The notes: generated by a model from the sequence alone, not told the origin. A stretch of 64,000 bases of DNA from Podarcis filfolensis (GCA_964270895.1 OZ185439.1); one strand, 5' to 3'. Positions 25,593-62,570 are shown, counted from the stretch's first letter. Numbers and translations are program-made.

Positions 25593-25949
25593 CAAAACCT
25601 CCAAGTGTCCCTATATTCCAGGGACAGTCCCAGATTTACAGAAGCCGTCCCCATTTCTGATTTGATCCCAGAATGGCCCACTTTTCCTTAGGGCGTCCCT
25701 ATTTTCATCAGATAAATGTTGGAAGGTATGGACCCCTGAGCCAAGGAGATAAGTAACTATGCAACCATTAGAAGCCATTTGAAAGCAGCCCTGTATAGGG
25801 AAGTTTCAAATGTTTGATGTTTTATTGTGTTTTTACATATGTTGGAAGCTGGGGCACACCAATCAGATGGGCAGGGTATAAATAATAAAATTATTATTAT
25901 TATGGAGTAGAAGATCCCTATTTCCATTGGAGAAATGTTGGTGGGTATG
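25593..25949 (+). mobile_element. Composite TIR element carrying an L2 3' end, copy 1
   Basis: Ends CAAAACCTCCAAG / TTGGTGGGTATG. 6-bp flanks CTGGTT / CTGTTT. Direct repeats 25697-25730 and 25916-25949 bracket an L2 tail. Confidence 0.85.
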
Positions 25950-26579
25950 CTGTTTTAAGGAGACCACTATGGGGTAAAGCATGAGTTATTTGAAATCCAG
26001 ATGCCTCCAGCCAAGTCCAACACTGTGCGTAGAATCCAGTGTTTTTGTTCTGTAAATGGAAGAAGTGTTGTTCTCTCATTCTTTGAATGGAAGCTCCTTC
26101 TGTTCACAAAGTAAAAAGGTTGGGTACTAATCTATATCTACTATTTCCATACTGGCTGTGCAAACCTCTGGGAATGCATCTCCCCAGATTAGAATGCTTA
26201 GAAGCCTAGGTGGATCTTTTGTCTTTTTTCTACTACTGTTACCCATTCTGGGCCTTTGGGATGGGTCAGATCAAATTCTAAACAAACACACACACAAATA
26301 AGGGGCAAGGGGTAGAGGTAATATAGACAGCCAAGCAATAACTGTGGAAAAGTACAGGTTCCTGTGAGACATTTTGACTTATGATTTTGTGCCCAAAGAC
26401 TTGGCATTCCTGCCTTTCTCATCTAATAAAGAGAGATGATTCACTGATAATGGAAATGGTTCCTTAAGTAAATTGCTGCCTCATCTAGGCTTTTGTATTT
26501 GTAAGCAATAACTGGAAGCTACGGCACATTTTTACTCTCTTGTCTGGAAAGTATATTGACCTCAACTTTTGGCTCATAC

Positions 26580-26721
26580 CTGTGTTCTGATATATAACAC
26601 CAGCAGCATCATGTGTTTTAAAAAAACGTTCCTGGATTAAACCACCTCTAACTGTACATGGAGGGGAATCACTTGATTGAATACCACTGCTTACAAAAAC
26701 CCTGTTGAAAGCTAGTATGTC
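26580..26721 (-). CDS. Candidate internal exon, unidentified
   Basis: Minus-strand acceptor ...AAAATTTCTCCAG after a T-rich tract, donor CAG/GTATGA, 142 nt open (DILAFNRVFVSSGIQSSDSPPCTVRGGLIQERFFKTHDAAGVIYQNT). Confidence 0.2.
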
Positions 26722-27591
26722 CTGGAGAAATTTTATGCGTTCAGAAAGAAAGAAAAAAGCTGGAACCCTTCTCCTCACATTCAGCTTTCCACACGAAGAG
26801 TTATTGATATGGGAGAGAAGTCTGTCATGTGATTTCCTCATCTGCTGTGAGGGTAGTCCAAGAACCACCTTGCCGTGTGATTATTTGTTTCCTTATCACA
26901 GAGAGGCTTCTAAATGCAGATGCAGGAAAGTTTGGGTGGCTTGAATGGGAACTGCACACGCTCTTAAATGTACTATTCCCACACTGTTTGGGACAACAGT
27001 TCTATATAACAGGACATTTTCTAGGATTTGATCATGGTTAAGATTTTCCAGGGAATCAACAGGTAAACCATGTGGTGACATCAATCAGTCCTCAGGTTTG
27101 GTTTGGCTTTTTTGAACGATCTCCAAGAGATCAAATCCTGTGTTTGGGCCCCAATATACATCTTATTCATATGGATTCCTCCTGGTCTTAGCTCAGGAAG
27201 CAGAGAACACAGTGCAGAGTTGTTTTCCATTCTCTACATCTCAGAAGCAGATGTCATTCTGGATGCAATGCTTGGGCCCGCCATTCCTAAAAATCTACCT
27301 CCTCCCCTTTCTATGAGCCAATTCACATGCAATTTTCTTAATTAAAGGGTGCAATGTAACAAAGCCACCCTGTGCCTGTATTCGCTTCTGAAAGAAGGCA
27401 GCAGCCAATTTTCCACCAATGGCCGCTGAAGCAGCTGGGGAATACTTCCAAGCATGCTCATCCTTCTGTCATTCTGTACAATGCAACTGCAAGTTCTTTC
27501 AGTCACTGCCAGTACAGCTCAATTAAATCCACAACAGGCAGCCTGCTCTCCAAATATACCTCATTCTGGTGATGGAGGCTTTCCCCTAAGC

Positions 27592-28328
27592 CAGTGGTTT
27601 TCAATCAGTGTGCCATGGCACCTGGGGTGCCTTGAATGATGGTCAGGGGTGCCACGGGCAACACTGGCCTGTGTCCCTCTTTCCCTCCCTCTGTCCTCCA
27701 ATGCCCTCTTATGTCTCTGCCTCCCAAAGGCTTGCAGAGTTGTTTGTTGCAGCAGCCCTGACTACAAGCTCCCTAGGCAAATGGTCCTCTGGGGCTGGCC
27801 AGGGGGTGCCTCCCAGGCCCTTGTGGGGAAGTATGAGGAGGCAACTCTCTTTAGGGCAGGGGGGCAGCTCAGAGACCGGGGTGGCAGCTGCAGCTGCTCA
27901 AAGGACTCCCAAGGAGAGGGGATAGGAGAGGAGGCTGAAGGTGTTTGAAAAGGGGTGAGAGGCTGCCAGCTCTGCAGGCAAGGGGTGACATAACTGGACT
28001 CTTGAGCCCCACAGGGGTGCCACAGAAAGAATGTACTGTACAGTGGTACCTCAGGTTAGATATGCTTGAGGTTACATGTGCTTCAGGTTACAGACTCCGC
28101 TAACCCAGAAATAGTGCTTCAGGTTAAGAACTTTGCTTCAGGATAAGAACAGAAATCGTGCTCTGGCAGCGCAGCAGCAGCAGGAGGCCCCATTAGCTAA
28201 TGTGGTGCTTCAGGTTAAGAACAGTTTCAGGTTAAGAACGGACCTCTGGAACGAATTAAGTACTTAACCCGAGATACCACTGTAGTTGGTCATGGAAGCT
28301 GTGGACCCAAAAGGCTTGAAAAACTCCG
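27592..28328 (+). mobile_element. hAT non-autonomous element with a nested mariner MITE
   Basis: Ends CAGTGGTTTTCAA / TTGAAAAACTCCG. 8-bp flanks CCCTAAGC / ACCTAAGC (7/8). Paralog at 54905-55493. Confidence 0.85.
28041..28282 (-). mobile_element. Tc1/mariner MITE, CAGTGGTACCTC family (nested in hAT)
   Basis: TIRs present, TA on both flanks. Confidence 0.9.
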
Positions 28329-29074
28329 ACCTAAGCAAATGGGAAAGCAAGACTTTCCTCCTCCTGACAGCTTGTGGCAAGCTGTTGGTGAGGATAAATT
28401 TGATGGGTTGTGGGGGGTGGGGGGAAGCAGCCACCACCAGATTGGGGAAGAATATGAGCCAGTGCGTGGTAAGTGAAGAACAGCTGGGTTGCTCTTCTTG
28501 CCAGAAGCTCCAGGTGAAGGGGTGTGCAAACATGTTTAAAAGTATTCTCCAGCTGTTGTTCCTGTAGTAGGTGCCAAGGCAAGGGACTTCCCTTTCTCCA
28601 CTAAAGGCAAGTTTTTACATTCAACATGCTAGTGTAGAGTAGTTAAATAAACCACTCACAGTGCTTCCTTTCCATTTAGTGCATACTGTTGGAAAGAGAG
28701 GTTTGTTCCAAGCTGCCCCAGGACCTTAGGGTGAAGGGCAGATTTAAAATAACAGTAATGTAGTAGCATTGGGGGAAGTATTACAGAACAAATTAAGGCA
28801 GAATAAATCTAGCACTAATGTGCAGGTGCACTCTTCCATTGTCTCCCAAGACAGATAGATGCCAACACAAACAAACACGTGTGTATGTCACACACATACA
28901 CACACATGTGTCAAGAACGTGTTACAGAATGCACCAGTCTGGAGGGTCCCCTCAGACAAACAGCAGGTGAACAGATGCCAAGACTGATTCTTTTTCTTAT
29001 ATGTTATAATTACATACGAAGAAACTGCTGAATCAAGCCAATGGTCCCTTTAGTTCAGCATCTTGTTCTTACAG

Positions 29075-29251
29075 TGTCCAACCAGATGCCTGTGGAAAAC
29101 CTGCAAGCAAGGCGCAAGTACAAGAGCACTCTCATCTTCTGCCGTTTCCAGCAAGTGGCATTCAGAAGACTACCACCACAGCTAGTAGCTGAGCAACAAT
29201 CTGTTCAACAAATTAGAGTATCTAAGGAACAGCTAGACATTTCTTTGCTAG
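29075..29251 (+). CDS. Candidate symmetric internal exon, unidentified
   Basis: Acceptor CATCTTGTTCTTACAG, donor TAG/GTATGT, 177 nt (phase 1-1) open (SNQMPVENLQARRKYKSTLIFCRFQQVAFRRLPPQLVAEQQSVQQIRVSKEQLDISLL). Confidence 0.25.
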
Positions 29252-31661
29252 GTATGTTCCAGCTACTTCTGCCTGTAGTAGGGTGGACACAGCATTAACT
29301 TTGAAGAGGCTAAATTTTAACACTGGTAATATTTTAGGTGTTTTAATTTTATTTTTATTTTATTATTTTTATAAAAATATTTATATACTACTGTGTCATA
29401 AAAAATATATCACATCAGTTTACGGCAATATAAAAACGTAAAACCAAACAATGAAATCATAAAAAGTTTAAACCAACTTAAAAGCAAAAATAAGTGAAAC
29501 GCAAACATCTGCAGATCATTGGGTGGGATGTATCCTTAATTCATTTTTATATTTGTTTTAAAAATATTTGGGCACAGCATTTGTTTTAAATTAATTAATA
29601 GGTTGTCCTTAAAAGTCTAACATCAAGCCAAAATCTAGACATCTGGGAATTTTAGATTCTGGAATCGTATGTTCCAGTCATTGGTGTGTGCGTGCTTCTT
29701 TTTCTCTTTAAAAATGTTAATTTCCTAAAACCTGCTGTGAAGTATTATTAGCAATCACATCATGTTTAAAAATGCCCTTCAAGATTAAAAGCCTGAGCTG
29801 GAGGCCAGATTGCATCTCTCCAAACTCAATTTTTCCTTGCTTGATATATGGCATCACCTACTTTATTTCCGTTTTATATCATTATATCCACCTAGCCAAC
29901 TGAGGCCCATTCCGAACCAACTCATAATTGCGATCCATTTTTCTTTTAGAAGGATGAGAAATACTTTATGAACTACACACAAGCTGTACCACCTAAAAAA
30001 GAAACCAGCAGAACATTTTTATCCCTGCTGGTCTCATACTCAGTATTTTCTGAGTATATATGATAGATTACAAGTTGCTCTAGGGTACAAACATTTGCCT
30101 ATTTCCTGCAAACACATTTACTGCTAATGCCAGTGGACAAGCAATCAGGAAGTCTCATTCAGTTTGTACAAGTTTTTTCAAACTCTAAAAGGGCATTGTA
30201 TGAGGGCTAACAACTTCTGGGAGAGATGCCTTGGCAGAAGTGGGGAATAGCGTTACTGTAAGCCCAGAGGAAAGGAGCATTATATCAGCCACTGTGATGG
30301 GTGAATAGAATGAGGCCTCTGGGTATTTGTACTAGTTGCCTGGCCTCTTGACTTTGCCTGGTCAACAATGAAGGTGTCAGCTCCAGCCCTAGCTGAAGCT
30401 CTGGCCCCAGCCCCTGACTACACGGATCTTGAGTTTTGACACACACATTCCAGAACTTGTTCCTCATATGGTCACAGCCCACTAACAAAGCACAGTGCCC
30501 GTTCGTAGCCTGAATATCTCAAGCAGAGGCTAGCAAAAAACCTGCTTAAAACCACCTGCTGTAGAAGAATACACCCTGAGGTTCTTCTACAAACCTGCCA
30601 CGTATATTTTTAAACACCTCCATCTACTCTGACTGCTCTTGACAGCAGTTCAAATCTATCTCCAGCAGTGGCATTCTCTCATTACTGTCAAGTTAGCTGC
30701 CACATTAAGCAAAGAAAAGTACATCACCCAGCATCTTGTCTGACAGCAAGCACTATTGAGCAAGACAGGGACACAAACAAGAGCCCCACAGCATTTTATC
30801 TGCTTAGTAGGGTTGCTATCAGAGAAGAACAGACAGTCTTCTAAGGGCGCTTCCAGGCTATCGCTGTTTTGGGGTGGTATCACTGATTGGCAAATTCAAT
30901 CACATGCTGGAAAATTCAAGTTGCGCAATTAAATTTGATGCAGAGCTCTTGCGCAACAAACCTCCTTCTCCCCAAAATCAGACATTTTGAGATAAGGAAA
31001 GTGATGTGGAAATGTAAAGCGTAAAAACAACACTGGTTGATGTAATGCTGTTTGAACTTGCAAAGAGATCAGAATGAATGCTGAGTAAAGAGCTGGTGTC
31101 ATCTAGCATGCCTGCAAACTTGGTAAACACAAACCATGATGAATGCTCAATAATCAGGTGGTCTGGAAGCAGCCTAAAAAGGCCAGAAGGAAGGAACTTT
31201 CCACTAAGCAGCATACTTAGGGGCAAACTACACTGCAAAAAGAACATCAACGCGTATACTAGGATCAGAGGGGTGAAGAAATTCCCCCTTTAAACCCTGG
31301 AAGCATCACCAGATTGTGAGAGGTGGCTTTGCAGTGGCAACCAGGAACATATTAGTGTGGAAAAGTGCAAGCTGTGTTCACAAGTGCTTGGACACAACTC
31401 ACTTTCTCCCCGGGGGGGGGGCATCAAAATGGTAAAAGATCCTTCCACAACAAATAGAAAGCTGAAACATAGTACATAGCACAGGTCAAGGCACTCTGTT
31501 TAATAAAAAGGAGGGTGCTTTTATGCCTATCACTCAAAACTCAAGAATAAGCACTCTTAATTACTAAATCCACCACTCCAGCAGCAGGGATTGCTCTTTA
31601 AAACATGACCAGGTTGGGAAAGGAGGTATTTGCAGAAATTTATGCGCATTAGAAACATATA

Positions 31662-31901
31662 CAGTGGTACCTCGGTTTACGAACTTAATCCGTTCCAGAA
31701 GTCCGTTCTTAAACTGAAACTGTTCTTAAACTGAGGTGCGCTTTCCCTAATGAGGCCTCCTGCCACCGGTGCCCTTCCACTGTTCAGGTTCTGTTCTTAC
31801 ACCGAGGTAAAGTTCACAAACCGGGACACTACTTCCGGTTTTGGAGATTTGTAAACCGAATAGTTGGTAAGCAGGGCTGTTCTTAAACTGAGGTACCACT
31901 G
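31662..31901 (+). mobile_element. Tc1/mariner MITE, variant of the CAGTGGTACCTC family
   Basis: TIR CAGTGGTACCTC / GAGGTACCACTG, TA on both flanks. Confidence 0.9.
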
Positions 31902-32388
31902 TATGAGACATGCATATTTCACAATTAAGGGTGGTTCAATTAAGTTTTAGTCAGAGTAGACCTATTTAAATTAATTGGCCTTATTTAGTCAAGAGTTATT
32001 CATTTCAATGGATCTACTGTAAGTAAAACTTAGTTGAATACTCCCATAAATGTTTAAAGAATGTGAAGCGGTACATATACTTACAATGGAAGTAGGTTTG
32101 TGTTGAAGGCAATGGCAGTGTACCCGGGTACAGTGAAGTCTGCAAGAATTCAAAAAGTAACCTGTCTATAAATCTAGGACTTGAATGTTACCTAGAATTA
32201 GAAAACCTGAATATAAGTAACAGTTTAAAGAGTAGTTTGTCTCCTGTAACTTAATAGATTTACAAAACTCCTTAAAAACAATAACAAAAAGAAATTTAAG
32301 GTGCAGAAGGTTACCCACTAACTTTCAAAAGATGGTGTGGGTTCCTGAATTCCCTATGTACAATGAAGAAGCTCACAATAATTTAAGT

Positions 32389-33686: not shown

Positions 33687-34028
33687 GTAAGTGAACGTAA
33701 TACCGCCAACATTCCTCTGAAAACAGGGACATTCTTTTCTATGCCATTATTAATGCTTGAGCATTTCCTCCTGGTCAAGTGTACAAAAGTTATTAGAGGA
33801 AACACACAAAACTGGGGTACTTTAAAGCACAGAAATCTTGGAATTTATGTATTGCATTTAGGGAAGCTCTGAGGGGAAAAGAAAACCCCAAATCAATAAA
33901 TACTACTAACCAGCATTGATATTGATGTAGAATAGAATGTCCCTATTTTCTGAGGACTGCTGGAGAGTAATAGCATTGGAGGGGGGATTTAAGACCAGTA
34001 AGTCCAGGGGGCACACAGGCCTCCTGTA

Positions 34029-34116
34029 GAAGTGTGCATGCACATGAAAGCTCATACCAGTAACAAACTTAGTTGGTCTCTAAGGTGCTACTGGAAGGAA
34101 TTTTTTTATTTTGTTT
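34029..34116 (+). mobile_element. 88-bp Penelope-like 3'-end copy with a broken hammerhead and 12-bp TSD
   Basis: Near-identical to the reverse complement of 41632-41719. TSD AGGCCTCCTGTA at 34017-28 and 34117-28. Confidence 0.9.
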
Positions 34117-34195
34117 AGGCCTCCTGTAAGTCCATTACATCACCCAAATGCACAACTGCTCTTGAATGGCACTCTGTGTCCTTGAAGGAGCTATA

Positions 34196-34410
34196 CAGTG
34201 GTACCTCGGGTTAAGAACTTAATTTGTTCTGGAGGTCTGTTCTTAACCTGAAACTGTTCTTAACCTGAGGTACCACTTTAGCTAATGGGGCCTCCCGCTG
34301 CCACTGCACAATTTCTGTTCTCATCCTGAAGCAAAGTTCTTAGCCTGAGGTACTATTTCTGGGTTAGCAGAGTCTGCAACCTGAAGCGTCTGTAACCTGA
34401 GGTACCACTG
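34196..34410 (+). mobile_element. Tc1/mariner MITE, CAGTGGTACCTC family
   Basis: TIRs present, TA on both flanks. Confidence 0.9.
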
Positions 34411-34947
34411 TAACTGGAAGGAGAAATTGCAGTACCTGCAGTGTATGACTGGAAACAATTAGGGCAGATCCACAGAGATCTTTGTGCCCTGGGGCAAAGT
34501 TGCACAAGATGAATTGTTTTGATTTGTTTGTTTGTTTGTTTCAGCTGGGGCTCCACTTTCTCACCTATAGGGTCAAAGCACCTATATTTCCCACAAAAGC
34601 ACAGTCTCTAGCTTGGCACTGTGATCGTCTTGGTTTTCACTTAAGGTGCAAAAGCTCATTTCAAGCCCACCATGGCCAAATCAAGGCGGCGTTTACTAAT
34701 CAAGGAGCCCCCTCACACAAATAGTTTCTGTCCTGAGGAATGCTGCCCCCCCCCAGTGGCCTTCCTGGGAAGCATTGTTCTCATTGTAAATGAGCTACAT
34801 TTGACCCTAATTATGTCATCCAGTACCTAAATTTGCTATGTGATAATCTCTGGTCACTTGAAGAGGAATAAAATGGATGGGTGCTCAGTATGGCAGCAAA
34901 GAGGAAATGGATGTGAACAATTATAATTTTAAAAAAATATCAATATA

Positions 34948-35183
34948 CAGTGGTACCTCATGTTACGGACGCTTCAGGTTACAAGACACTTCAGGTTATA
35001 GACTCTGCTAACCCAGAAATAGTACCTCGGGTTAAGAACTTTGCTTTAGGATGAGAATAGAAATCGTGCAGCAGCGGCGTGGTGGCAGCAGAAGGCCCCA
35101 TTGGCTAAAGTGGTGCTTCAGGTTTATTCAGGTTAAGATCGGACCTCTAGAACGAATTAAGTTCTTAACCCGAGGTACCACTA
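34948..35183 (-). mobile_element. Tc1/mariner MITE, CAGTGGTACCTC family (inverted relative to 34196)
   Basis: TIRs present (terminal G>A change), TA on both flanks. Confidence 0.88.
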
Positions 35184-36382
35184 TATTCCGGTAACTAGAA
35201 TTAACTGGGGAAGGGAAGCTTTTGGCCCACTCAAAGATCACTACTGTACTTTTGAACAAATTAACTGGATCTGTGGAACGTTCCACTCAGTTCACAGGAC
35301 CATGTTTTAGCAGCTCCCACACCACAAATCTAAAAACAGAAGTGGGACTGAAACCAAATTTAGACTACCAGATTACACTGTAAAATTGGACTGTACCACT
35401 AGACTGTGAATTGGGGTGTGTGTGTCAGATATTGTAAACTGCCCTGTGAGCCTTGAATGAAGAGCTATATAAAAATTTAATAAAAAAATAGTTGAATAAA
35501 TAATTGAATACTCTACTGAGAAACAAAATCCCAGCATGCAGAAAAGGAATAAACTTGTCAGAACAGGCTATACTTGTCCTCTCTGATTTCTAGTTTTCTA
35601 GTGCAGAGGGGTTCTTCTATGGAGAGGCACTCTCCCCATCTCACCCCCGGAGTCTCAAGTGATGGAGTCAAGGAGCATTTTGACTACATGACAAATTCAG
35701 CCTCAGTTTGTGGATGCCACAGACTTCGCTCATTTTTAACTGGAAGGTTCTATTTTCCCCCACTGCCTTATAAAACCATATGTAACTTATTTCCTGTAAC
35801 TGCAAACTGATGACAAATCTGACTGGATTTATAATCCTGCCAGCAAGCAATATCTATTCATCAAGCGTACAATGGAAGATACAAGCCCAATCAAATAAAA
35901 TGCTTCTGGACTATTTCCAGCAGAGCTAATAATACAAATCGAATACTTCGTTAGCCAGTGTGTCTAAGGCTAAGACGCCTCATCCCAGAATTATTTTCCA
36001 TGGATTTAGTTTCTTAAATATTCATCCATCCAACAGCTAGAGTGAATTTTCATACGTATTTCTCAGACAGGGGAATTATAACACTTCAATAACTATATCT
36101 GGCTGCACTATGCATTGTAATGACATCAGACCAATGCCCAAGAACTGTCTCTCAGTATTAATTAGTAACATAGGTCACCTTCCCCATAGCCCCTTAAAAT
36201 ATCCCATTTTTAAAAAAAATCAGAGCATTGATTGAGGTACCTTCGATTCTTTTGTTTCCTCTATTTAAGCCCTCTGTCTTTCTGGCTGCCTGACACAAGT
36301 GTGTTAATATGTATTTATGGGCAGGCGTGGCAATATAACACATATAAATCAGCCTCATATAACCAACGTTTAACTCTAATTA

Positions 36383-41631: not shown

Positions 41632-43660
41632 CAAAAAAAATTTTTTTTCCTTCCAGTAGCACCTTAAAGACCAACTAAGTTAGTTCTTGGTATGAGCTTT
41701 CGTGTGCATGCACACTTCTTCAGATACACTGAAACAGAAGTTGCCAGATCCTTCTATATAGTGAGAAGGTGGGGAGGGGTATTACTCAGAAGGGTGGTGG
41801 GAATGGGTGGTTGGCAGATAGCTGTGATAGGCCTGTTGACGACTCTTAACGACTGCAATAGGTCTTACAGGAAAAAGCAAGGGGTGAGAAGGTGAAAAAT
41901 GGCTTTGTCATGTATAATGAGATAAGAATCCAATGTCTTTGTTCAGACCAGGTCTCTCCATGGTTTTAAGTTTGGTAATGAGTTGCAATTCAGCAGCTTC
42001 TCTTTCCAGTCTATTTCTGAAATTCCTTTGTAGTAATACAGCTACTTTGAGATCTTGTATAGAATGTCCTGGGAGATTGAAGTGTTCTCCTACTGGTTTC
42101 TCTGTCTTGTGATTCTTGATGTCCGATTTATGTCCGTTTATTCTTTGGCGTAAGGTTTGGCCTGTTTGTCCAATATAGAGAGCTGAGGGACACTGTTGGC
42201 ATTTGATGGCATATACAATGTTAGACGATGAGCAATTAAATAGTCCCGAGATGGTATGTGTGATGTTGTTGGGGCCAGTAATGGTGTTGTCCGGGTGTAT
42301 GTGGCAGCAAAGTTGGCATCTGGGTTTATTGCAGGCTCTGGTGCCAGTGTCCGTGTTACGTCTGGTTGTAGTATTATTGTGGGTTAGGAGTTGTTTAAGA
42401 TTGGGTGGCTGTCTGTAGGCAATGAAAGGTCTTCCTCCCAGAGCTTGAGAAAGAGAACTGTCATTGTCCAGGAGAGGTTGTAGATCTCTGATGATGCGTT
42501 GTACTGTTTTAACTTGGGAGCTGTATGTGATGACTAGAGGTGTTCTGTTATTTTCTTTTTTGGGTCTGTCTTGCAGCAAGTTCTCTCTGGGTATCTGTCT
42601 GGCTCTGTTGATCTGTTGTCTAACTTCATCTGCTGGGTATTTTAGTTCTAAAAAGGTTTGCTGTAGATCTCTTAGGTGAGAGTCTCTGTCTGTAGAATTG
42701 GAACAGATACGGCTGTAACGTAGTGCCTGGCTATATACAATGGACTGTTTGGTATGTTTGGGATGGTAGCTAGAGGCATGTAGATATGTTTGTCGGTCAG
42801 TTGGTTTACGGTATAAGGTGGTGTCTATGCGTCCATCCTGTATTTTTATAGTAGTGTCCAAAAAATGTATTTCTTGCATAGATTGATTCATTGTTAGGTT
42901 GATTGTGGGGTGAAAATCATTGAATTTCTGGTGGAAGGTGTCCAGGGTCTGTTGACCATGTGTCCAGATGATAAAAATATCATCAATGTATCGCAGGTAC
43001 AAGAGAGGTTTGAGTGGGTAGGAGTTTAGGAAACGTTGTTCTAAATCTGCCATGAAGATGTTGGCATACTGTGGGGCCATGCGGGTGCCCATTGCTGTGC
43101 CGCTGATCTGAAGGAACAGGTCATCACCGAATTTGAAGTTGTTGTGGGTAAGGACAAATTGGCAGAGTTTGGTGGCAAAGTCCGCTGTGGTTTTATCTGA
43201 AATGGTGTTCCTTATAGCTTGTAAACCATCGTTGTGTGGGATGTTGGTATACAGAGATTCCACATCCATAGTAGCTAGTATAGTGTTGTTGGGAAGATTA
43301 TTTAAAGATTGTATTTTCCTCAGAAAATCTGTGGTGTCACGTACATAGCTGGGAGCACTGATGGCATATGGTTTCAGAACAGAGTCCATATAACCGGAGA
43401 CACCCACTGTAATAGTGCCAATACCTGAAATGATGGGGCGTCCTGGATTTCCTGGTTTGTGTATTTTAGGTAGAAGATAGAAAGTTCCTGGTCGAGGTTC
43501 TGTTGGTGTGTTGGTGAGGATCTGTTCTTGGATGTGTGGGGGTAGCTCCTTAACAATCTTGTTCAGTTCTTTTTTGTATTCTTGTGTGGGGTCTGAGTCC
43601 AATTTTATGTAAAAGGCGGTATTGGAAAGTTGTCTGTGAGCCTCAGACAACTGTGAGCCT
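41632..43660 (-). mobile_element. Penelope-like retroelement (Neptune type), 5'-truncated, recent
   Basis: 11-bp TSD TTAAAAAAGAA (41621-31, 43661-71). Intact RT plus GIY-YIG ORF. 3' UTR contains a hammerhead. No upstream pseudo-LTR copy. Confidence 0.95.
41690..41727 (-). ncRNA. Minimal type I hammerhead ribozyme
   Basis: Sense GUAU-CUGAAGA-A-GUGUG(CAUG)CACAC-GAA-AGCU-C/AUAC. Stem I GUAU/AUAC, conserved core, palindromic AGCU stem III, predicted cut between 41694 and 41693. Confidence 0.88.
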
Positions 43661-43680
43661 TTAAAAAAGAAATCAAGCAT
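41908..43680 (-). CDS. PLE reverse transcriptase + GIY-YIG endonuclease (N-terminally truncated; first ~10 codons come from the flank and junction)
   Basis: RT motifs FYLLPKIHK, GRPIIS, MDVESLYTNIPH, GTAMGTRMAPQYAN, RYIDD, FLDTTI. Thumb LYRKPTD...YLHASSYHP. Cys linker CNKPRCQLC. Endonuclease NIVYAIKCQQCPSALYIGQT...RINGH...HFNLPGH. Confidence 0.95.
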   Translation of the reverse strand: MLDFFFKGSQLSEAHRQLSNTAFYIKLDSDPTQEYKKELNKIVKELPPHIQEQILTNTPTEPRPGTFYLLPKIHKPGNPGRPIISGIGTITVGVSGYMDSVLKPYAISAPSYVRDTTDFLRKIQSLNNLPNNTILATMDVESLYTNIPHNDGLQAIRNTISDKTTADFATKLCQFVLTHNNFKFGDDLFLQISGTAMGTRMAPQYANIFMADLEQRFLNSYPLKPLLYLRYIDDIFIIWTHGQQTLDTFHQKFNDFHPTINLTMNQSMQEIHFLDTTIKIQDGRIDTTLYRKPTDRQTYLHASSYHPKHTKQSIVYSQALRYSRICSNSTDRDSHLRDLQQTFLELKYPADEVRQQINRARQIPRENLLQDRPKKENNRTPLVITYSSQVKTVQRIIRDLQPLLDNDSSLSQALGGRPFIAYRQPPNLKQLLTHNNTTTRRNTDTGTRACNKPRCQLCCHIHPDNTITGPNNITHTISGLFNCSSSNIVYAIKCQQCPSALYIGQTGQTLRQRINGHKSDIKNHKTEKPVGEHFNLPGHSIQDLKVAVLLQRNFRNRLEREAAELQLITKLKTMERPGLNKDIGFLSHYT

Positions 43681-43900
43681 TGGTTTGCTGGATCAGACCA
43701 AGGGTTCATCTAGCCTAGCATTCTGATTCCAGCAGCTGCCTGCTAGATCCCTCTGGGAAGCTCACAAGCAAAGCATGAAGGTGATGACTCTCTTCTTCTG
43801 CTTGTTCCCAACACCTGATACTCAGGAGTTATGCTGTCTCTGAAACAGAGATTTCATTTTAGCCATCTAAGCTACTTGGTCCAGCATGAAGGAGATCTGG
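43672..43900 (-). mobile_element. CR1 LINE 3' fragment (its tail is the PLE target)
   Basis: GCTGGATCAGACCAAGGGTTCATCTAGCCTAGCATTCTG...CTCTGGGAAGCTCACAAGC, resembling 17200-17350. Confidence 0.65.
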
Positions 43901-50278: not shown

Positions 50279-50902
50279 CCTGAAAGCACTGCCTCACAGA
50301 GAAGACTGCATGAAATTGAACAGAAGGATTGCTTCATGTTTTATCTTCTTATGCAGCATGTTATGCCTTGTGTTTCCTTCCATACAGTAGTTTATGTGGG
50401 GCAAGGAGAGAAAAAGGTTTTTTAAAAAATAAAAATGGCTGCCTGATGCATGCATTTCAAATAGGTAATTGCAGTCATGTGGTTCTCAAAGAAATGTGAT
50501 TAAAAAGAAGTTTTGACTGGTGTAATACAGTGTCTAAGAGTTTGAGCTATAAGCAGGAATTCCCAGGTTCCAATCTTACTTCATCCATGAACAAGCTAGG
50601 CAAACTACAGTCAACCTCACAGCCCTGCCTAATATGATAACATCACTAATACTATAGGGAGTATTAAGAGATAAGGAACTGCTGGCCCAGAGACCTAAAC
50701 TTCTAGGCTTCTCTGGTGACCTCCAGCAGCCCTCAGATCCAAAGGTACCACTTTCTGCTTTGTCAGACAAGAAACAAGTCAAGAGTACTTCAACACTCTA
50801 ATCCAAAAGTAAAGAGTAACAAAATTTTTGGTAGAACCTTAGATGCTCCCTCCCAGTTAGAGGGACCTTCCCCCCTCTTATTTTTGTATGCAGGCAGATA
50901 CA

Positions 50903-51268
50903 CATACCCTTCAACATTTCTTCAATGAAAATAGGGACATCCTATTTCATCATCATCATAATTTTATTATTTATACCCCACTCATGTGACTGGCTTGGCT
51001 TCCAACATATATAGAAACATAATAAATCATTAAACATTTTTAAAAAACCCTTCCGTATACAAGACTACCATCAAATGTCTTCTAAAGATTGTATTGTTAG
51101 TTATCTCCTTGGCTCGGGGTCACATAACTTCATGCCCTCCAACATTTCTCCGATGAAAATAGGGACATCCTTAGGAAAAGTGGGACATTCTGGGATCAAA
51201 TCAATAACCGGGATGGCTTCTGTAAATCTGGGACTGTCCCTGGAAAATAGGGACACTTGGAGGGTATG
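50903..51268 (-). mobile_element. Composite TIR element carrying an L2 3' end, copy 2
   Basis: Perfect 6-bp TSD GATACA (50897-902, 51269-74). Inner repeat of the terminus at 51131-51164. Confidence 0.88.
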
Positions 51269-54200
51269 GATACATGGGGCAGTCACATCATCACATTCCA
51301 CATAGGCCCACTAACTGAGAAAGAAAGATATTTACCCAGCAACAGTATATGGCAGTTTGAGTGCATCTTGATGGAAGATGCATTGATCCTAAGCAACAAA
51401 TAAGCAATGATGCACATGTTTGTGAAGTTGTGAGTATCCTTTACCTCATGTCCTTGGCACCAGAAAAAGAACGCTTTTAAAAGAGTCTCATATACCATTT
51501 GAGAGATTGATATAGTTTGTTCTTGGCTATAAACTAGCAATGAACATGGAAAGGATTTTCAGAGCTAAATCTGTCATTAGCATAAAAAGTGAGCACTCAA
51601 ATGGTCTCCTGAGTGCCAACTTGCATACAAAGTTATATAGAAAAGTTTGCTGGCATGGCTCCCTCCGGAGTTAAAATGAAGATGGGCTGAATTTACATGA
51701 TTCCTGTTTCTAATGTACAGCATTAAAAACTGTGACTGGATGGCTGGTGTACCTGATCAGTTTGTTGTCCAGGTACTAACTGTTGATAGGCAACTTCACC
51801 TTTGCAAAGCAGGGCATATGGCCACTCTACTCACCAGCCCATGAACAGTATGAACTTTGGCCCTCATTCCTCTTGTTGAAAATGGAAAAGAAATCAAGAT
51901 TCACAACTTTATGAGGACCATGCAGCTATTCAAAATGAATATACATTACAACGTTGCTGAAGCCAAACGGATGCATTAGCAGCACTGAAGTGATCTCCTC
52001 AGGATGCAAACCTGGGCAGCATGTATGGAGGTCCTGGGCTGCCCAGACAACAAGACCCCTCTCTGCTTTCTCTAATGTGGTCCAAAGGAAAGCAGAGCAA
52101 TACATTTGGCACCAGCTTGGCTGCAAGTGTTGCCAGAAGGAGGCATACAAGGCGCCATCCAACCACCTTAGGCATTCCACTCCAGATTTGTGTAGGGTTT
52201 ACTTCTTAGCCTTTTCTTCCCCTGAAGATATCCCGCAAGGCAGCAGAGGTTCAGGACCAGAATTTTCCTTCTTTTAGATGGGCTACCTTTCTAGATTGAC
52301 AAGCCCCATCTGTAGGAAGACACATGTAAGAGAAGAGTTGTGCTTCTTGCCACCAGCGATGTCACAGGCAAATATTCTTTTGCAGCAGTTTAATGACAGC
52401 ACATGCATTCACCCTTATTTTTCCAATATAGGCATCACCATATGAAGTATTCTTTATTCCCCCACCCTCCCACCACCCAGATTGAATATATATTGCAGCA
52501 TAGGATCATTTTGTGCAACTCTGCCAAAAGCTAAATTAACAGCTCCAAGCAGCACTTTCTATTAAACAGCCATTTATTTTCACCGCATCACAGAGCATGC
52601 AGATTTTGCTCTGCTCTTAAGGGAAAGGACCCTGCTTTACAAACGCCTTTAGAAAAGGTCACAGGAAAGACTGTGGTGTGTTTTACGTAGGGTATAGGAA
52701 GCTGTCCTTCAGAATACATAAAGCGCCTCTGCAAAAGTAAACAGACACGCACGTAATGGGAAAAGGGGATTAATAACGGAGTGGAGAGAACACAGTGAAC
52801 TTGGATGATCTGATTCTTCACAGCTTATGAAGAAATCTTTAATACCCTGCTGCAAATCTTGCCACAAATGACCGGAACCTGTGGGCTTAAGTGCAGGGAT
52901 TTGTCTGCTTTGAGTTTGCTTACTGAGATTACATGATAAAAGATGATAGCAAAGGGCCCAGAGAAACTGCTCCCTATAAATACATCCTTAAATATGTACA
53001 CAAGTTGTTGGTTTTTTGTCTTTGTTTTTTAAGAATATTCTTGCATTAAAAAAATAATAACACCTACACTCCACACCAGAGATGTTATCTTACATTCACC
53101 CAGTCATGAATAAGAATCACCTTTTATTCCTTTTGACGACTTGTATGTTTATTAACTGTTGATCCTGTGGTGCCTCTGTTATGTTTACATGTTTTATTAC
53201 AAATTAATTAAAAAAGTATTTTAAAAAGATGATAAAGCCCATAAAACTGCAACTCATACCGTTATAGCAGACATACAAGTTCCAAAAAGTTACACATCAT
53301 ACATATTCAGTAAGTAAAATTTCCCATAACCACATGGATAGTAAATATTGTATTTTAGGACAGCATCAAAACAGCCTTAAATGCATTTGTACCCATTCTT
53401 TAAAAGTTAGCTCATATAGGAGGCAAATGAGACCAAAGGCTTTCAAAAGGCTTTAAAAAAAATTATTTGCCAGCAGAACGAAGCATTAAGGCCAAGCATG
53501 AAACCATTTGTTCACAGTTGCCGTTTGAAAGCCATGAAAATAGCAAGGTGTACTCCAAATCAAAATGTTCAGCACGGACTGCATTTTGTTCCTGTAACAA
53601 AACACAACTTAGATATTTTCACATGACCATCTGTGCCTGCTGGTCTATGTCAATACTTCTGGGATTTCCTTCATCACCATCAGTTGCACAGGAGCCAACT
53701 CCTAGGGGCCAAGGTCCATTCAGGCTCCCCAATAAAATATTTGAGGGGACTGCCCCCCAAGTTGATGGGCATTGCCACTCAAATGGTGTGGGTGCACCCT
53801 GTCATGTGACTGATTATGCGAGGAGGGGCTTACCTGCCCCCCCCAATATTTTATTCAACTTGACACCCCCTGATCAGTTGTATTAGTAAACCCCAAGAAT
53901 TTAGTAAATCCTCAGGAAGGTGCCATTGGGGGTGGGAATCCATACTGAACAGGGTCTCCCCAGTGCGGCAAGCATACTGATGGATGCATCCAACATTATG
54001 CTTGGGTTTAAAATACACACTTCTGCCTCTGCTTTGGCACAAAGTTTGAAAATCACTAAACAGTTGCATCTGTCTTCTTTCATACCACAGGAAAATTTAC
54101 TAAGGAGGGGGGAGAGAGGTAGAGTAGAACAATAATTTTACAGGTGTGAATAGGAAAATGTGTGATTGGGGAACAGTGAGAGTTTCACTGGGTGGGTGAC

Positions 54201-54897: not shown

Positions 54898-54904
54898 CAT
54901 AGTC

Positions 54905-55493: not shown

Positions 55494-56482
55494 GCATAGT
55501 CCATAGGTCACATCCACATTGTGCTGGGAATTGTAGCTCTGTGGGGGGTAAACTACAGCGCCCAAGATTCTTTGAGGGGAAGCAATCTAACTGAGGCACA
55601 AGGAGAACTACAAGAACAGGCCCTCACCAACAAAGTACCCCCATTAAAGCAGTGGTCTCCAGAGTTTTGGCGGCTGAGTGCACATTCTGAAATCTGAGAA
55701 AATGCATTGCAAGCAGCACAAAATATCCATTTCACACAAGAAAAATGCAGGATGCTCAGAAGTACTCTCCCCCAGGCCCCACTCCCACCCCCGAACAAGG
55801 CAACCCCCTCCCAAACAAACAAAAAGCCAAACGCTCATATCTGCTATAACTGCAGGGAGGAGAGGTTTATCTGTTTCCCCCCCATCCTACACCAGACGGC
55901 AGATTGGGCCGTCTGCACAGTGGGAAGTTCCCCTCCACACACACAAAGGTCATATCTCTGTGTGGGTGGGTCTGGGTGATATCTGTGTTCTGAGGAAGGC
56001 TGTGGAGGAGAACTAAGCCTCCTTCTCCCTGATTCCTCATGCTTGTAATGAATAAGAAAAAAAATAGAGATACAGCTCATCAATCAGGCAGTATTCATTA
56101 GCTAAGCTGAGAAGCCTGAGGTGTAAAAGAGGTCTCCATGCTTTGCTTACTACCTCATCCCAAAGGAAAGAAAAGGGGGGGAGTCCTCTCTTCAGATGTT
56201 TTGTGGCAAGATCCTGAGTTTCTAAGCAGATCTCTCCTTAGTCTGCAACATGAAGTTTACCTCAGAGTGGTATGCGTGCAGGCCTGCATGTCTGCGAGAC
56301 TTTTGTTCCCACACATTTTTTATTTTATCTTTTTGCAGTTGCACCATAGTACAACTAATCATTAATAAAAAAATAAAAAAATAGGAAGCTCCCAGAAGCA
56401 GTTTTGAGATGTCTTGACATCTTGGCCAGGGAGAGGGTGAAGTGTTGCCAAAAGCATTAATCACCAAGGTTTATTGCTCTAT

Positions 56483-56491
56483 ACACACACG

Positions 56492-56545
<54 letters not shown>
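56483..56545. repeat. Compound (CA/CG)n-(GA)n microsatellite
   Basis: Visible directly. Confidence 0.95.
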
Positions 56546-56884
56546 CCCTGAGCTGCAGATCTCACACTATTAGCCCTGCCCCACAGGCCTGTCCCTAGGT
56601 GCAGAGCCCAAGGTGGGCAGCTAGTGGGCTCCCATGGCCCCTATCTACTTCCTTGACTGGCATAGTTGAGGTGTTTAAGTGTCCACAACACCACCAGGGA
56701 GGACAGAGCAGGGACACACATAGCACCCTCAAGACGTGGTGGAGTTGGAACCAGGTTTTAGGGGACCTTGGCCAATGTGCACTTTGAGGTCCCTACCACA
56801 CCACTCCCAGCCCCCATTTACCATCCTGGAAAGGAGGTGGGGAGAATGAGTCTCTTTCCGCCATCCCATTCCCACAACCATCTG

Positions 56885-57439
56885 AAAGAAAAAAAGGAAT
56901 GGTGGGGGGGACCGCCAAGGGAAGAAGACTCAGAGCCCAGCGAGTGGTGGTGAGATGATGATGAGTGGTCAGAAAAAGCAGAGGGAAAGGACTGGGGGTG
57001 TGGAGGTGTCGGAAGCTGAAGAGGCAACAGGGCTTAGTTAGCAGGCAGTGTCTGTAGCAGAGAGAAGTCCAGAATCAGACGCAGGAGAGGAGGGAGGCCA
57101 AGAGGCAGAGATGTCTGGCTGGTGAAGAGGCATGGGTGTCTCCCCCTCCTGCTGCAACAAACTCCGCTCCTCACAGGTCTCCCAGAACCAGGAGAGGCAT
57201 GAAGAGGGTGGAGGAGAAGTTAGCTTCATGCAGGCACAGTCTCAGTCTGCTTAGGAAAAACCCCGGAGAGGAGGGGACTTAGGCAGCTGTGGGGAGGCAA
57301 GGACCTTCAGTCTCATGGGGGCCAGACCTGTCGGAGATGAGTTGCTGTGCTCATTAGGCCTGTGCAGATCCTGTTTTTGCTAATAAAGAGGTAACCTCAA
57401 CTTGTGAAGTTGTGATTTACTGCCAGCTCATTCCTGTCA
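56885..57439 (+). mobile_element. LTR-like fragment
   Basis: Purine-rich body, AATAAA at 57382, terminal ...CCTGTCA. No 5' end or TSD resolved. Confidence 0.55.
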
Positions 57440-58716
57440 TCAACCAAGTGGGACAGGCAAATCAAGGAGGTCAAAGAGGCTGGCAGGAAGCACCATAACT
57501 GGAGATGGAGGTACGTTCTCTGTCAGGATTGCCCACCTAAGTCCTGTTGCCAGAATGGGAGAATGAGGAAGGAGACGTACCACCAAGGAATGTGTGGGTG
57601 TGGGTGGGTGGGTGTGTAGGGCCTTATCCATGAAACTCACCTTGGGCCACTCACAGTCTCTCAGTCTAACCTACCTCACAGGGTTGTTGTGAGGATAACA
57701 TTGAGAGGGGGAGAATTATGTACCCCACCTTGAACTCCCCAGCAAAACTCTCAGGGAAAGGAGGAGAGCACTTCTACATGGTTGCTCCCTCTTGCTTTGT
57801 GCTGAAGAAGGCCTGAAGTGACTGGGACATCCCTTTCCAGCCCCTTAACTACTGAGCCATCAGGGTTTGAGCTGTCCGCACTCCATTTTCTTCAAAATGT
57901 TGCTGTGTGTGGAAACACAGAAGCAGGGAAAGGGTGAAGACAACACTGCTCACATGGTTACGTCACATGCATTGTGTGGAGAGAACATAGCAAGAGGCAC
58001 ACACTTAAAAACTGCTGTGCCCCACCTGGCGCAAGTGTGGCTGGTCAATTACAATTCTGCTTATAGCAAAATATCATTGATTAGCAGCCCTGAGTCATCC
58101 ACTCTTTACATACAAAATACAACCCCCACACACTCGGTTCTTCAAGAATGAGTCATTGACAGCCCTATGTTTCCATTTGTATGTTCTTGACACTTGAATA
58201 ACCAAACAATGGGCCATTTTTGATGAGGAATATTTCAAAGCCAGTTACTAGGGTGCAACCAGCTTATGAACAGGTTTATTCCAAGCCTTGATTTCCCCAC
58301 TTTGGAGCTTGGAGGTGCTGGAAAATAAGCAAACATTTAAGCTGTGTGCTACTTGCCTGCAACTTCTTCCTGTATGGTTTGAGCTTCAGATTTTCCCACT
58401 AGCAGATAGCAATCAAGCTTTCTTTTGCCATTATGCCAGTAGTAGCACTGACGATGCCATTTTTGTTTGCTTTAAATGCTTCCGTTAAAATGAAGCATTT
58501 TCAAATTTGATCGAAAGCAAGCCAATCCAAAAATTGTATACACAGGCTGCACACACAATACCTTTAAAGCATATTGGAAACACATTTCCACACATATACA
58601 CCCCCAAGGAATTCTGGAAACTGGAGTTTCTTAAAGGTTGCTGAGAGTTGTATCTCTGTGAGAGGTAAACTACAGCACCCAGAATTATGTGAAGGAAAGA
58701 ATATGCTTAAAAGGTA

Positions 58717-59063
58717 AAGGTAAAGGGACCCCTGACCATTAGGTCCAGTTTTGGCCGACTCTGGGGTTGCAGCGCTCATCTCGCTTTATTAGCTGAGGGA
58801 GCCGGCGTACAGCTTCCGGGTCATGTGGCCAGCATGACTAAGCCGCTTCTGGCAAACCAGAGCAGCACATGGAAATGCCTTTTACCTTCCTGCCAGAGCG
58901 GTACCTATTTATCTACTTGCACTTTGACATGCTTTCAAACTGCTAGGTTGGCAGGAGCAGGGACCGAGCAACGGGAGCTCACCCCCTCGCGGGGATTCGA
59001 ACCGCCGACCTGATCGGCAAGTCCTAGGCTCTGTAGTTTAACCCACAGTACCACTCGTGTCCC
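58717..59063 (-). mobile_element. Sauria SINE with 15-bp TSD (young)
   Basis: TSD TATGCTTAAAAGGTA at 58702-16 and 59064-78. Confidence 0.93.
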
Positions 59064-59166
59064 TATGCTTAAAAGGTACACGTTACATTTTCAGAACAAT
59101 TCCCCACAAAAAACGCTTTGATTGCTCTAGCCATACACTAAACCTCAAAACCACATAACAAGAACA

Positions 59167-59323
59167 CAGTGGCGTAGCGTGGGGGGTGCAGGGGGGCCGG
59201 CCGCACCGGGCGCAACATCTGGGGTTAGGGCAAATCCACGGGTTAGGGGGCGCAAATCCACGGGTTAGGGGGCGCAAATGACTTGCCTTGCCCCGGGTGC
59301 TGACAACCCACGCTACGCCACTG
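59167..59323. mobile_element. Very young hAT-type MITE with TTAGGG-containing internal repeats
   Basis: Perfect 17-bp TIR CAGTGGCGTAGCGTGGG and perfect 8-bp TSD CAAGAACA (59159-66, 59324-31). Confidence 0.92.
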
Positions 59324-59340
59324 CAAGAACATGATAATGA

Positions 59341-59927
59341 AATACCCTCCAACATTTCTCCAATTAAAGTAGGAAGGTCCTGTTCCATAATTATAATTTA
59401 ATTATTTATACCCTGCCCATCTGACTGGGTTGCCCCAGCCATTCTGGGCAGCTTCCAACATACAGTGGTACCTCTGGTTATGTACTTAATTCATTCCGGA
59501 GGTCCGTTCTTAACCTGAAACTGTTCTTAACCTGAAGCACCACTTTAGCTAATGGGGCCTCCTGCTGCTGCTGTGCTGCCGCCGCGTGATTTCTGTTCTC
59601 ATCCTGAAGCAAAGTTCTTAACCCGAGGTACTATTTCCGGGTTAGCGGAGTCTGTAACCTGAAGCGTATGTAACCTGAAGCGTATGTAACCCGAGGTACC
59701 ACTGTATATAAAAACATAATAAAAGGTTAAACATTTAAAAACCTCCCTATACAGGACTGCCTTCAGATGACTCAGGGGTTGGATAACGCCATACCCTCCA
59801 ACATTTCTCCGTTGAAAATAGGGACATCCTAAGGAAAAGCGGGACATTCCAGGGTCAAATCAGAAACCAGAATGGCTTCTGTAAATCTGGGACTGTCCCT
59901 GCAAAATAGGGGCACTTGGAAGGTCTG
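59341..59927 (-). mobile_element. Composite TIR element carrying an L2 3' end, copy 3 (nested mariner MITE)
   Basis: Perfect 6-bp TSD TAATGA (59335-40, 59928-33). Inner terminus repeat at ~59790-59823. Confidence 0.88.
59463..59704 (+). mobile_element. Tc1/mariner MITE, CAGTGGTACCTC family (nested)
   Basis: TIRs present. Simple TA duplication relative to the uninterrupted copies. Confidence 0.92.
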
Positions 59928-62176
59928 TAATGAAGGTCATCCCTAACCTTCTCCCTCATTCCAAAATGTAAAGCCCTTCTGAGTTCCTAAGCTGAAAAAT
60001 ATGTTACATTACACAGTTATTGTAAAAGATGCAAATGGCCATTGTCTGGCGCGGAGGGAAGGCAGCCTATCCTGCTTAACCTTATCCTAAAGTCTGCTGT
60101 TACAAATTATTGTTTCCAACTTAGCACAATGTAGTTCATTCTGGAGCACTGTGGGGAAATTAGATGGTGGCTAGACCAGGCTGCCTACCATTGCTCATAG
60201 CATTTGTGCCCACCATCACCACTTGATAAGCCCACTAACAGAGAGAGCCCCCCCCCCAAGTTCACTGTCAAAGCTGGAGACCTTCCTAAACAGTTGCCAG
60301 AGGCTGGCCTCTGTTCTCTGGGTCAAACTACTCCACGTCCTGCTTATGACCTTCATGTCCTGCTTATGATCTGGCACTCATCTAGCTAGGCTGCCAATGA
60401 AAAAAGAAAGCCACTTTTGGACTTGGCAAGAGAGGCTATTCGTATATTTTTGCTGGAGGATTAAGCATGCATTTATTCATTAATCATGAAAGCTGAGAAT
60501 AGGATTTTCATAGAGAGATGCACTGTATTTCTAAACAACAGGTGGTAGGGATAAAAACCACAGGGGAAAAGCATCACCCACAGGCCCTTCCTGCAAGTTT
60601 CCAGAAGCACCTGGCCACAGGCTACTGTTGCTTTAATCCAGCCCAGAATCACAGAATTATAGAGCTGGGAGGCACCCCGAGGGTCATCTAGCCCAACCCC
60701 CTGCAATAGCGTGAATGACATGGCACATTCATGTATCAGCACCTGCATTATTGCCCCCTTTTAAATAGCAGACATAAAGCAATGGCATCTACTGAAAAGG
60801 GGCATGAGCTATAGCAAATGAAAAATACATTGAGGGTGCCCAGGGTTGGCATGGTAGTGAAAAGAGAATATCCCAGAGACAAACACATATGGATACACAT
60901 GGGGATAGGGAGTAGTACAAGTCTTAACTTGAGCCACAACTTGGTTCCAGAGCCTAGTTTGAATTCTAGAAAGATATTGTTCAGCACTTCTCATTCACTC
61001 CCCTTATAAGTACAGGACAACACACACACACACACATATGTCGTGGAGCAGTTCTGCAGCTGTTTTTTAACATATTTATCATATTTTTGTAAGACAAAGG
61101 AAGAGCAGAGAGCAAGATAAATGTACTAGAACTATTATGTGCCTAAGCTGGCTGACACTTAAGGAAAAGGATAGGACTCACTTGCCAAGCCAATTTTTGA
61201 TTTCCTGGTGTGCAGTGTGAACCTGGCTTTGCAGATGAAAGACCTCATGCAATTGCTCAAAATGCTGCAACTGGTACCTTCAACATTAAATTTGGGTGGG
61301 TGGGGAATCCCCAGCTGCTAGTCCTTTGATTCTTATGGAGAGTCAGTTAAGCAGTGAAATCAATGGCTGGTACATACGTTTTGCTTAGTTTCAAATGCTC
61401 CCTTTATGCTTTTCTCTCTGAATTTTACTCTGTCCGAGATGGCATTACATATGCCACACTGTTGGTAACAGGTGGTTACTAGACATTTTTTATTGCAGTA
61501 TGACCTTAAAGTTGGCTTATCTTTCAAGTCAACCAGCTGAACAAATATTCAAGAAAAAAACAAATGGGGTTTTAAGCAGTTAATCCTTTGGCAGCCCTGT
61601 TGCCTTTTGTCTCTTTTTGCTACTTGCCTGCAAGGACCACATTTGTCATCAGGCTTGTCAGCGAGCTTTGCCTGCTGCGCTAAATTAGATATTGACCGGA
61701 TGTGCCAGCTTAATAGTATAAACTTGTTGTGAGAACAAAATGAACTCCTCTGCAAAGCAAGGCCATGAACTCGCCTTACCCCAGTTGCCTCACATGGGCC
61801 AAGTATAATTAAATAAATGGACATCCCCTCCCCCTCCCCCTTGCAGACGCCTAAGTTAACCTACATGGATAAGGGTTAAAGTGTTCTTATAAAGGGAGGA
61901 GGGCTCAGTTAACCAGTAAATGTGATAAGCAGGGCACTGGGTCAAAGAGGTCTCTTCTACGGCATCAGAATTCATAGTTTAAAAGGACTTACATGGAGAG
62001 AAAAGATGTCTCCTGCTTTCTTAGCTAGGTGCCTTTAAATACTTCTGTGCAGCTCATAGCAGAGTGTCTGTCTGTATTGTTGCAGGGAAAGAGAACAGTG
62101 GCTATAATCCTGGCAGTCTCCTGACTTGAGGAACAGATTGGCCTGATCATTGCACAAATAACATTGGAGTTAATCG

Positions 62177-62570
62177 CAAACCCTCCAAATGTCCGTATTT
62201 TCCAGGGACAGTCCCATATTTACAGAAGCTGTCCCAGTTTCTGATTTGATCCCAGAATGTTCTACTTCTCCTTAGGATGTCCCTATTTTCATCAGAGAAA
62301 TGTTGGGGGGTAAGGAGTTATGGGACCCCCCCCCCAAGCCAAGGAGATAAGTAACTATACAACCTTTACAGGGCATCTGAAGGCAGCCCTGTATAGGGAA
62401 GTCTTTTAATGTTTAATGTTTCATTATGTTTTTATATATGTTGGCAGCTGCTCAGAGTGGCTGGGGCAACCCAGTAAGATGGGCAGGGTATAAATAATTA
62501 CATTATAATTATTATTGTTGTTGTTGTTGTTGTCGTCGTCATCGTCATCAGAGAAATGTTGGAGGGTATG
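62177..62570 (+). mobile_element. Composite TIR element carrying an L2 3' end, copy 4
   Basis: Flanks TAATCG / TAATCA (5/6, CpG-type change). Inner terminus at 62281-62314. Confidence 0.85.

Follow-up and report, generated by a model that had tools for sequence, protein, structure and literature searches.

A probable chimeric DNA transposon carrying an L2 3' end in the lizard Podarcis filfolensis

Related mobile elements and 6-bp target duplications

Maize Ac/fractured Ac macrotransposons and bacterial composite transposons move through the pairing of a normal transposon end with a more distant compatible end. A similar arrangement is found in a family of four repeats in a 64,000-nt stretch of Podarcis filfolensis DNA (OZ185439.1; hereafter the window, the single stretch to which all counts given here refer). 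Each of these composites is made up of a miniature inverted-repeat transposable element (MITE) module, the 3' end of a long interspersed element (LINE) of the L2 type, and a second copy of the right terminus of the MITE. As in the macrotransposons and composite transposons, the intervening DNA appears to move as cargo with normal target duplications. In contrast to the macrotransposons, the distal end of the lizard element is a 42-nt duplicate of its own terminus, which probably originated from insertion of the cargo, and the product is a small multicopy family rather than a rare large rearrangement. Cargo capture and the use of distal ends, or end-swapping, by DNA transposons are known kinds of event, and the composite is a tidy example of them. 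The family is probably an old, non-autonomous cut-and-paste transposon (class II, with terminal inverted repeats, TIRs) whose mobile unit is chimeric.

The composite also resembles Pack-MULEs, hAT and CACTA elements that carry gene fragments, and MITEs with nested repeats, in that a non-coding element amplifies foreign DNA without reverse transcription. The lizard cargo differs in being a retrotransposon 3' end and not part of a host gene, and in lying between two copies of one terminus rather than simply inside the element. A further comparison can be made with the short interspersed elements (SINEs) that have L2-derived tails, which in eel and zebrafish are mobilized by L2 via a shared 3' stem-loop and repeat tail. 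The composite is likewise a short non-coding element with an L2 3' hairpin and a microsatellite tail. However, the lizard copies do not appear to be reverse-transcribed, as a transposon terminus lies beyond the tail, the duplications are fixed at 6 bp, and the 5' arm of the hairpin has been lost in two of the four copies.

Target duplications of 6 bp offer a means of comparing the composite with described superfamilies. Dada elements produce 6-bp duplications and insert into small-RNA genes (small nuclear RNA or transfer RNA). The usual terminal motif of hAT elements is YARNG, although this is a tendency only. A first-pass annotation of this DNA had listed groups with 6-bp duplications, and two of its entries are documented, namely the hAT6 group of hAT (Kapitonov and Jurka 2007, according to the citing passage of PMC12730594) and the IS3EU superfamily (PMC12730594). 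The list left out Polinton/Maverick elements, which also make 6-bp target duplications and have TIRs of hundreds of bp (PMC3014272). Fungal IS3EU families have TIRs longer than 30 bp and ends of the form TAYGG..CCRTA (PMC12730594).

The termini of the lizard element have the form CAKAC...GTMTG. Like hAT6 elements, the composite has short TIRs and subterminal repeats and duplicates 6 bp of its target; its CAKAC ends fit YARNG at the first three bases, with a C instead of a G at position 5. The duplication length is shared with IS3EU as well, and an element at 33700-33971 that may be related to the composite also has TIRs of ~40 nt. However, the CAKAC..GTMTG ends and 12 perfect nt of the composite are unlike the TAYGG..CCRTA ends and >30-bp TIRs of the fungal families, while animal termini may differ. 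Judged from these sequence features, hAT6-like, IS3EU, or another superfamily are the candidates for this family. All 148 open frames in the window that reach 75 codons were searched against Pfam; no transposase was found, and only a Penelope reverse transcriptase (RT) and a GIY-YIG domain were matched.

Three other assignments were considered and rejected. The duplication length fits a derivative of Polinton/Maverick, but a TIR of 12-40 nt in a 360-bp element does not. Dada was set aside as the flanks of the copies are unrelated and without RNA genes, with no Rfam family matched in the window at the gathering threshold. A solo long terminal repeat (LTR) of an LTR retrotransposon or endogenous retrovirus would have duplications of 4-6 bp and termini of the form 5'-TG...CA-3', whereas the termini of the composite read 5'-CA...TG-3' on either strand.

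The composite and its mobility

The four stretches and their flanks were compared by blastn against the whole window, followed by multiple alignment. The copies, located at 25593-25949 (+), 50903-51268 (-), 59341-59927 (-), and 62177-62570 (+), are alignable end to end, in agreement with the first-pass annotation, which had assigned one architecture to these coordinates and strands. The layout common to all four runs from a 12-nt TIR through a 138-bp MITE module and a 5'-truncated L2 3' end to a 42-nt repeat of the right end, giving a mobile unit of ~360 bp. A 26-nt pattern for the left end has exactly four matches in the 64 kb, and a 20-nt pattern for the right terminus has exactly eight, two per copy; neither is matched in shuffled sequence. 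A profile built from the first 138 bp returned four full matches and four short outer duplicates across the window, and no simple 138-bp copy of the MITE was found by this search. With f as the share of composites in the family, the count of four composites among four copies gives, by simple arithmetic, a lower 95% bound on f of about 0.47.

The MITE module is 138 bp long in each copy and closes on its right side with a complete right terminus. Its left TIR of 12 nt (CAKACCCTCCAA) is present in all four copies and is 92% complementary in copy 2. Imperfect similarity between the left end and the reverse-complemented right end reaches ~40 nt, with a GGGAC motif at a similar distance in both. An 11-nt motif ending in GGGAC recurs four to five times in the module, always in the same orientation, and these subterminal repeats are putative transposase-binding sites. 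Folding of the module as single-stranded DNA is no better than that of shuffles (z = -1.06), indicating that this is not a hairpin-type MITE. Between the inner right terminus and clear L2 homology lies a spacer of ~10-15 nt, while the outer duplicate consists of 42 nt of the MITE right end and starts directly behind the L2 tail. The consensus sequences of the inner and outer repeats (four copies each) are identical over 42 nt save at CpG positions. The copies look non-coding: of the frames listed within them (45 amino acids or more), none that reaches 75 codons has a Pfam match. Exact-pattern scans of metagenome contigs with the terminus and with the most conserved internal 27-mer gave no match, and neither did a protein word search with a 96-codon open frame spanning copy 2.

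Copy 1 is 357 bp long and is flanked by target duplications at 25587-25592 and 25950-25955 (CTGGTT/CTGTTT). Its MITE module (25593-25730) extends from the left TIR to the complete inner right terminus, and its L2 cargo (25738-25907) contains the last codons of open reading frame 2 (ORF2), the stop, the 3' untranslated region (UTR), and an (ATT)n tail, with the 5' arm of the UTR hairpin deleted. The outer 42-nt duplicate (25908-25949) is the end used in transposition. Copy 2 (366 bp) has target duplications at 51269-51274 and 50897-50902 that match at 6/6 positions (TGTATC on the element strand). Its module (51131-51268; 138 bp) is the nearest of the four to the consensus, with a Kimura two-parameter (K2P) distance of 0.038. 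The cargo of this copy (50945-51115) has also lost the 5' arm of the hairpin, and its outer duplicate (50903-50944) forms a 41-nt direct repeat that is 90% identical to the inner terminus.

Copy 3 had been listed with the other three under one architecture. That architecture holds, but the 587-bp length of this copy is due to a nested MITE, and ~39 nt have been lost at the 5' side of the L2 part. Its target duplications (59928-59933/59335-59340; TCATTA) match at 6/6 positions, and its module lies at 59790-59927 (138 bp). The cargo (59383-59773) retains an intact UTR hairpin and is split by the nested element (59463-59704, minus strand, 242 bp), a later and unrelated insertion with a TA duplication at 59705-59706 and 59461-59462. 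The outer duplicate of copy 3 (59341-59382) is recovered by both the terminus pattern and the profile. Copy 4 (394 bp) is flanked by TAATCG/TAATCA at 62171-62176 and 62571-62576, which differ by a CpG transition. Its module spans 62177-62314 (138 bp), and its cargo (62336-62514) is preceded by a run of ten C residues. In this cargo the UTR hairpin is intact, and the 24-codon end of ORF2 is closed by a stop codon at 62407-62409. The rest of copy 4 (62515-62570) is an expanded (TTG)n/(GTC)n tract followed by the final 26 nt of the outer terminus (62545-62570); the microsatellite has replaced the ~16 nt with which the outer duplicate would begin. At 62515-62544, the (ATT)n tail of the cargo has turned into (TTG)n/(GTC)n, a small case in which the tail of a LINE gave rise to another kind of microsatellite.

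The content ascribed to the cargo in the first-pass annotation (last ORF2 codons, 3' UTR, and (ATT)n tail) is confirmed by alignment to free L2 ends. The cargo of ~170 bp comprises 24 ORF2 codons, a stop, a 3'-UTR hairpin, and the (ATT)n tail, and it aligns with the 3' ends of two free LINEs, located at ~215-410 and 2715-2912 (nhmmer E-values of 1e-42 to 1e-60). The first of these (215-410, plus strand) has no MITE sequence on either side and served as an outgroup. The second (2261-2912, plus strand) includes an open ORF2 C-terminus, stop, 3' UTR, and (ATT)n tail; its 182-codon open frame (2261-2806) runs into the C-terminal codons and stop shared with the cargo. The L2 label is based on homology to these free copies, with their ORF2-like C-terminus, UTR hairpin, and microsatellite tail, and membership of the L2 clade is presumed from the character of L2 ORF2 C-termini. 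An atlas search with the L2 ORF2 C-terminus returned unnamed eukaryotic clusters only. The hairpin has 15 pairs, with interruptions, and one compensated pair distinguishes the captured from the free lineages (U-A versus C-G). The loss of its 5' arm in copies 1 and 2, against its retention in copies 3 and 4, indicates that the cargo is not under constraint. Passengers in composites account for four of the six L2 3' ends of this type in the window.

Two short matches involving L2 sequence were also observed. The (ATT)n tails of both free L2 copies (400-420 and 2912-2930) are followed by the same 8-mer, CAACGAGG, beyond which the flanks differ; this 8-mer could belong to the L2 3' end, reflect a preferred L2 target, or be a coincidence. 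An 8-nt word, ATGTTGGA (element strand), is common to the L2 3' UTR (50996-51008) and the MITE terminus (51133-51145) in copy 2. This word is probably a chance match, and it could have been a source of microhomology at some step.

The target duplications identify the ends at which the composite moves. In all four copies the duplications are 6 nt long and lie outside the outer ends, as had been claimed, with matches of 5/6, 6/6, 6/6, and 5/6 for copies 1-4 (22 of 24 bases); one of the two mismatches is the CpG transition in copy 4. Duplication lengths of 2-5 and 7-10 fail in all fits tested, and the arithmetic chance of at least 5/6 matches in all four copies is about 5e-10. In no copy do the duplications flank the inner terminus only. 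Instead, the six bases after the inner terminus are identical across copies and unlike the left flanks, indicating that the outer terminus is the end used. Blastn and alignment further demonstrate that homology ends at the TIRs, that the flanks are mutually unrelated, and that copies occupy both strands.

The inner-terminus/spacer/L2 junction, the L2 truncation point, and the junction between the tail and the outer terminus are the same in all four copies. The first-pass annotation had asked whether the composites share one L2 junction, and those in the window do. Consequently, the capture is taken to have happened once. Maximum-likelihood analysis of the L2 part places the captured pieces from all four composites apart from the two free copies, with branch support of 99/98. 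Together, the shared junctions, this separation, and the unrelated flanks with outer 6-bp duplications point to movement as a unit after a single capture, so the proposal of capture followed by amplification stands as far as four copies allow. In all likelihood, then, the composite is the mobile unit and spread by cut-and-paste transposition.

Pairwise K2P distances range from 0.12 to 0.19 for the MITE module, from 0.17 to 0.29 for the L2 part, and from 0.18 to 0.23 overall. The distances are of similar size, as expected for parts that travel together. Individual copies diverge by about 8-10% from the consensus of the four, and these values, with the pairwise divergence, indicate that the family is old and presumably inactive.

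Origin of the second terminus

The first-pass annotation left the source of the duplicate terminus unexplained. We put forward the target-site duplication of the L2 itself as that source, with an insertion 42 bp inside the right end of the MITE, and consider the proposal to have about an even chance of being correct. Under this scheme, a first nick would be made 42 bp inside the MITE right end, where target-primed reverse transcription of the L2 would start. The second-strand nick would fall a few bases beyond the end of the MITE, and fill-in would copy the 42 nt of MITE together with roughly 10-15 nt of flank, leaving a complete transposon end on the far side of the L2. Finally, the transposase would use the left TIR together with the newly made outer end, and the whole unit would move with 6-bp target duplications. 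The duplicate directly abuts the L2 tail, and the inner repeat that it matches closes at the MITE terminus, a short way upstream of the L2 5' junction; this is the arrangement that a LINE target-site duplication leaves.

Several points weigh against this account or limit the composite reading as a whole. At more than 50 nt, the target duplication would be a long one for a LINE of the L2/CR1 type, and no target duplication is detectable for the two free L2 copies, so the window offers no calibration of length. The spacer of ~10-15 nt could be flank, filler, or diverged L2, and it resembles the free L2 copy at 215-410 in this region. A Pfam scan detected no RT domain beside the free L2 copies that would back the L2 label. 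The sample is four copies from one 64-kb window, with no empty site, simple copy, master locus, or autonomous element in it. A different source for the distal end can be imagined from the macrotransposons, in which case the outer 42 nt would be all that remains of a second MITE, fractured and lying downstream of an L2 fragment, and the left end of one element would have been paired with the right end of the other. The final step of such a pathway, use of the downstream terminus, is identical to that proposed above and the data fit equally well; the identity of inner and outer termini is also compatible with it, as independent copies of a young family could share near-identical termini. However, the pathway calls for more events. 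Two positions have to coincide: the first base of the fractured copy has to abut the L2 tail exactly, and no more than about 10-15 nt may separate the end of the complete copy from the point at which the L2 is truncated on its 5' side. Both coincidences are explained together by one L2 insertion with a long target duplication, and we regard a two-element origin as unlikely. In a variant of it, the duplicate could equally come from aberrant gap repair with template switching, which likewise requires a larger number of coincidences than the L2 duplication.

Explanations that dispense with cut-and-paste movement of the composite are far less probable. LINE endonucleases have sequence preferences, and the MITE terminus and L2 UTR have an 8-nt word in common, so that four L2 insertions might have struck the same hotspot in existing MITE copies, with no composite mobile unit. 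This is refuted by the junctions, since the 5' truncation point, spacer, tail junction, and 42-nt duplicate are identical in all four copies; moreover, the captured L2 pieces form their own group, and 6-nt duplications outside the outer terminus are not an expected product. The probability left to independent insertions is vanishingly small. Two further possibilities, namely that a single locus was duplicated segmentally or in tandem, or that L2 retroposed a chimeric transcript, are scarcely better placed and remain highly improbable. Three copies do lie within 11.7 kb (50.9-62.6 kb), and the cargo retains the L2 3' hairpin and tail, which are the features recognized by L2-type RTs in eel and zebrafish. 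Segmental duplication is nevertheless ruled out, as homology halts at the TIRs, the flanks are unrelated, both strands are occupied, and neighboring copies are no closer to one another by K2P distance than distant ones. Retrocopies, for their part, would extend no further than the (ATT)n tail, and their duplications would vary in length, whereas all four copies continue past the tail to the outer transposon terminus and have duplications of a fixed 6 nt, which rules out L2 retroposition.

Other elements in the window and implications for lacertid repeats

The element at 33700-33971 (~272 bp, strand not assigned) is older than the composite, and both of its ends (~40 nt) are like the composite right terminus, with a 3-nt indel. 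No recognizable target duplication was found for it. Based on its ends, this element may represent a sister MITE family with symmetrical ~40-nt TIRs that belongs to the same superfamily as the composite. The window also contains an abundant MITE of ~245 bp with TIRs beginning CAGTGGTACC and a TA target duplication, which identifies it as being of the Tc1/mariner type. Blastn located six copies, with 72-90% mutual identity, at 15516-15759, 28039-28289, 31659-31904, 34193-34400, 34943-35186, and 59463-59704; the last of these entered the cargo of composite copy 3 once the L2 had been captured. An open frame at 41911-43692 on the minus strand encodes RVT_1 and GIY-YIG domains and spans 594 codons from stop to stop, or 590 amino acids from the first ATG (41908-43680). 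This open frame belongs to a young Penelope-like element.

The literature searched contained nothing specific on a MITE/LINE-tail chimera or on a MITE with 6-bp duplications in Podarcis or Anolis, and no description of a retrotransposon insertion supplying a spare transposon end was found there. The layout of this one family suggests that such a route may be simple, in that the insertion of a retrotransposon would make a spare transposon end and thereby turn the retrotransposon itself into cargo. A squamate MITE with a 6-bp duplication is also a lead to an uncharacterized transposase lineage, whether hAT6-like, IS3EU, or other.

The composite has consequences for the way in which lizard genomes are read. 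In repeat annotation, every copy would be broken into three entries, two DNA-element fragments with an L2 fragment between them. With four of the six L2 3' ends of this type in the window carried as passengers, L2 copy numbers and age landscapes in lacertids would be partly contaminated by sequences that were never themselves reverse-transcribed. A broader reading joins these elements: the long duplication made by a LINE hands a DNA transposon a second functional terminus, the resulting chimera is the main form of a high-copy lacertid family belonging to a 6-bp superfamily not yet described in squamates, movement by two machineries might occur, and L2 counts are inflated. Taken as a whole, this reading is possible but doubtful. 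If it is true, the chimera would inflate the L2 counts obtained by repeat annotation, and copies that combine an intact L2 hairpin and tail with cut-and-paste ends might be movable by two machineries.

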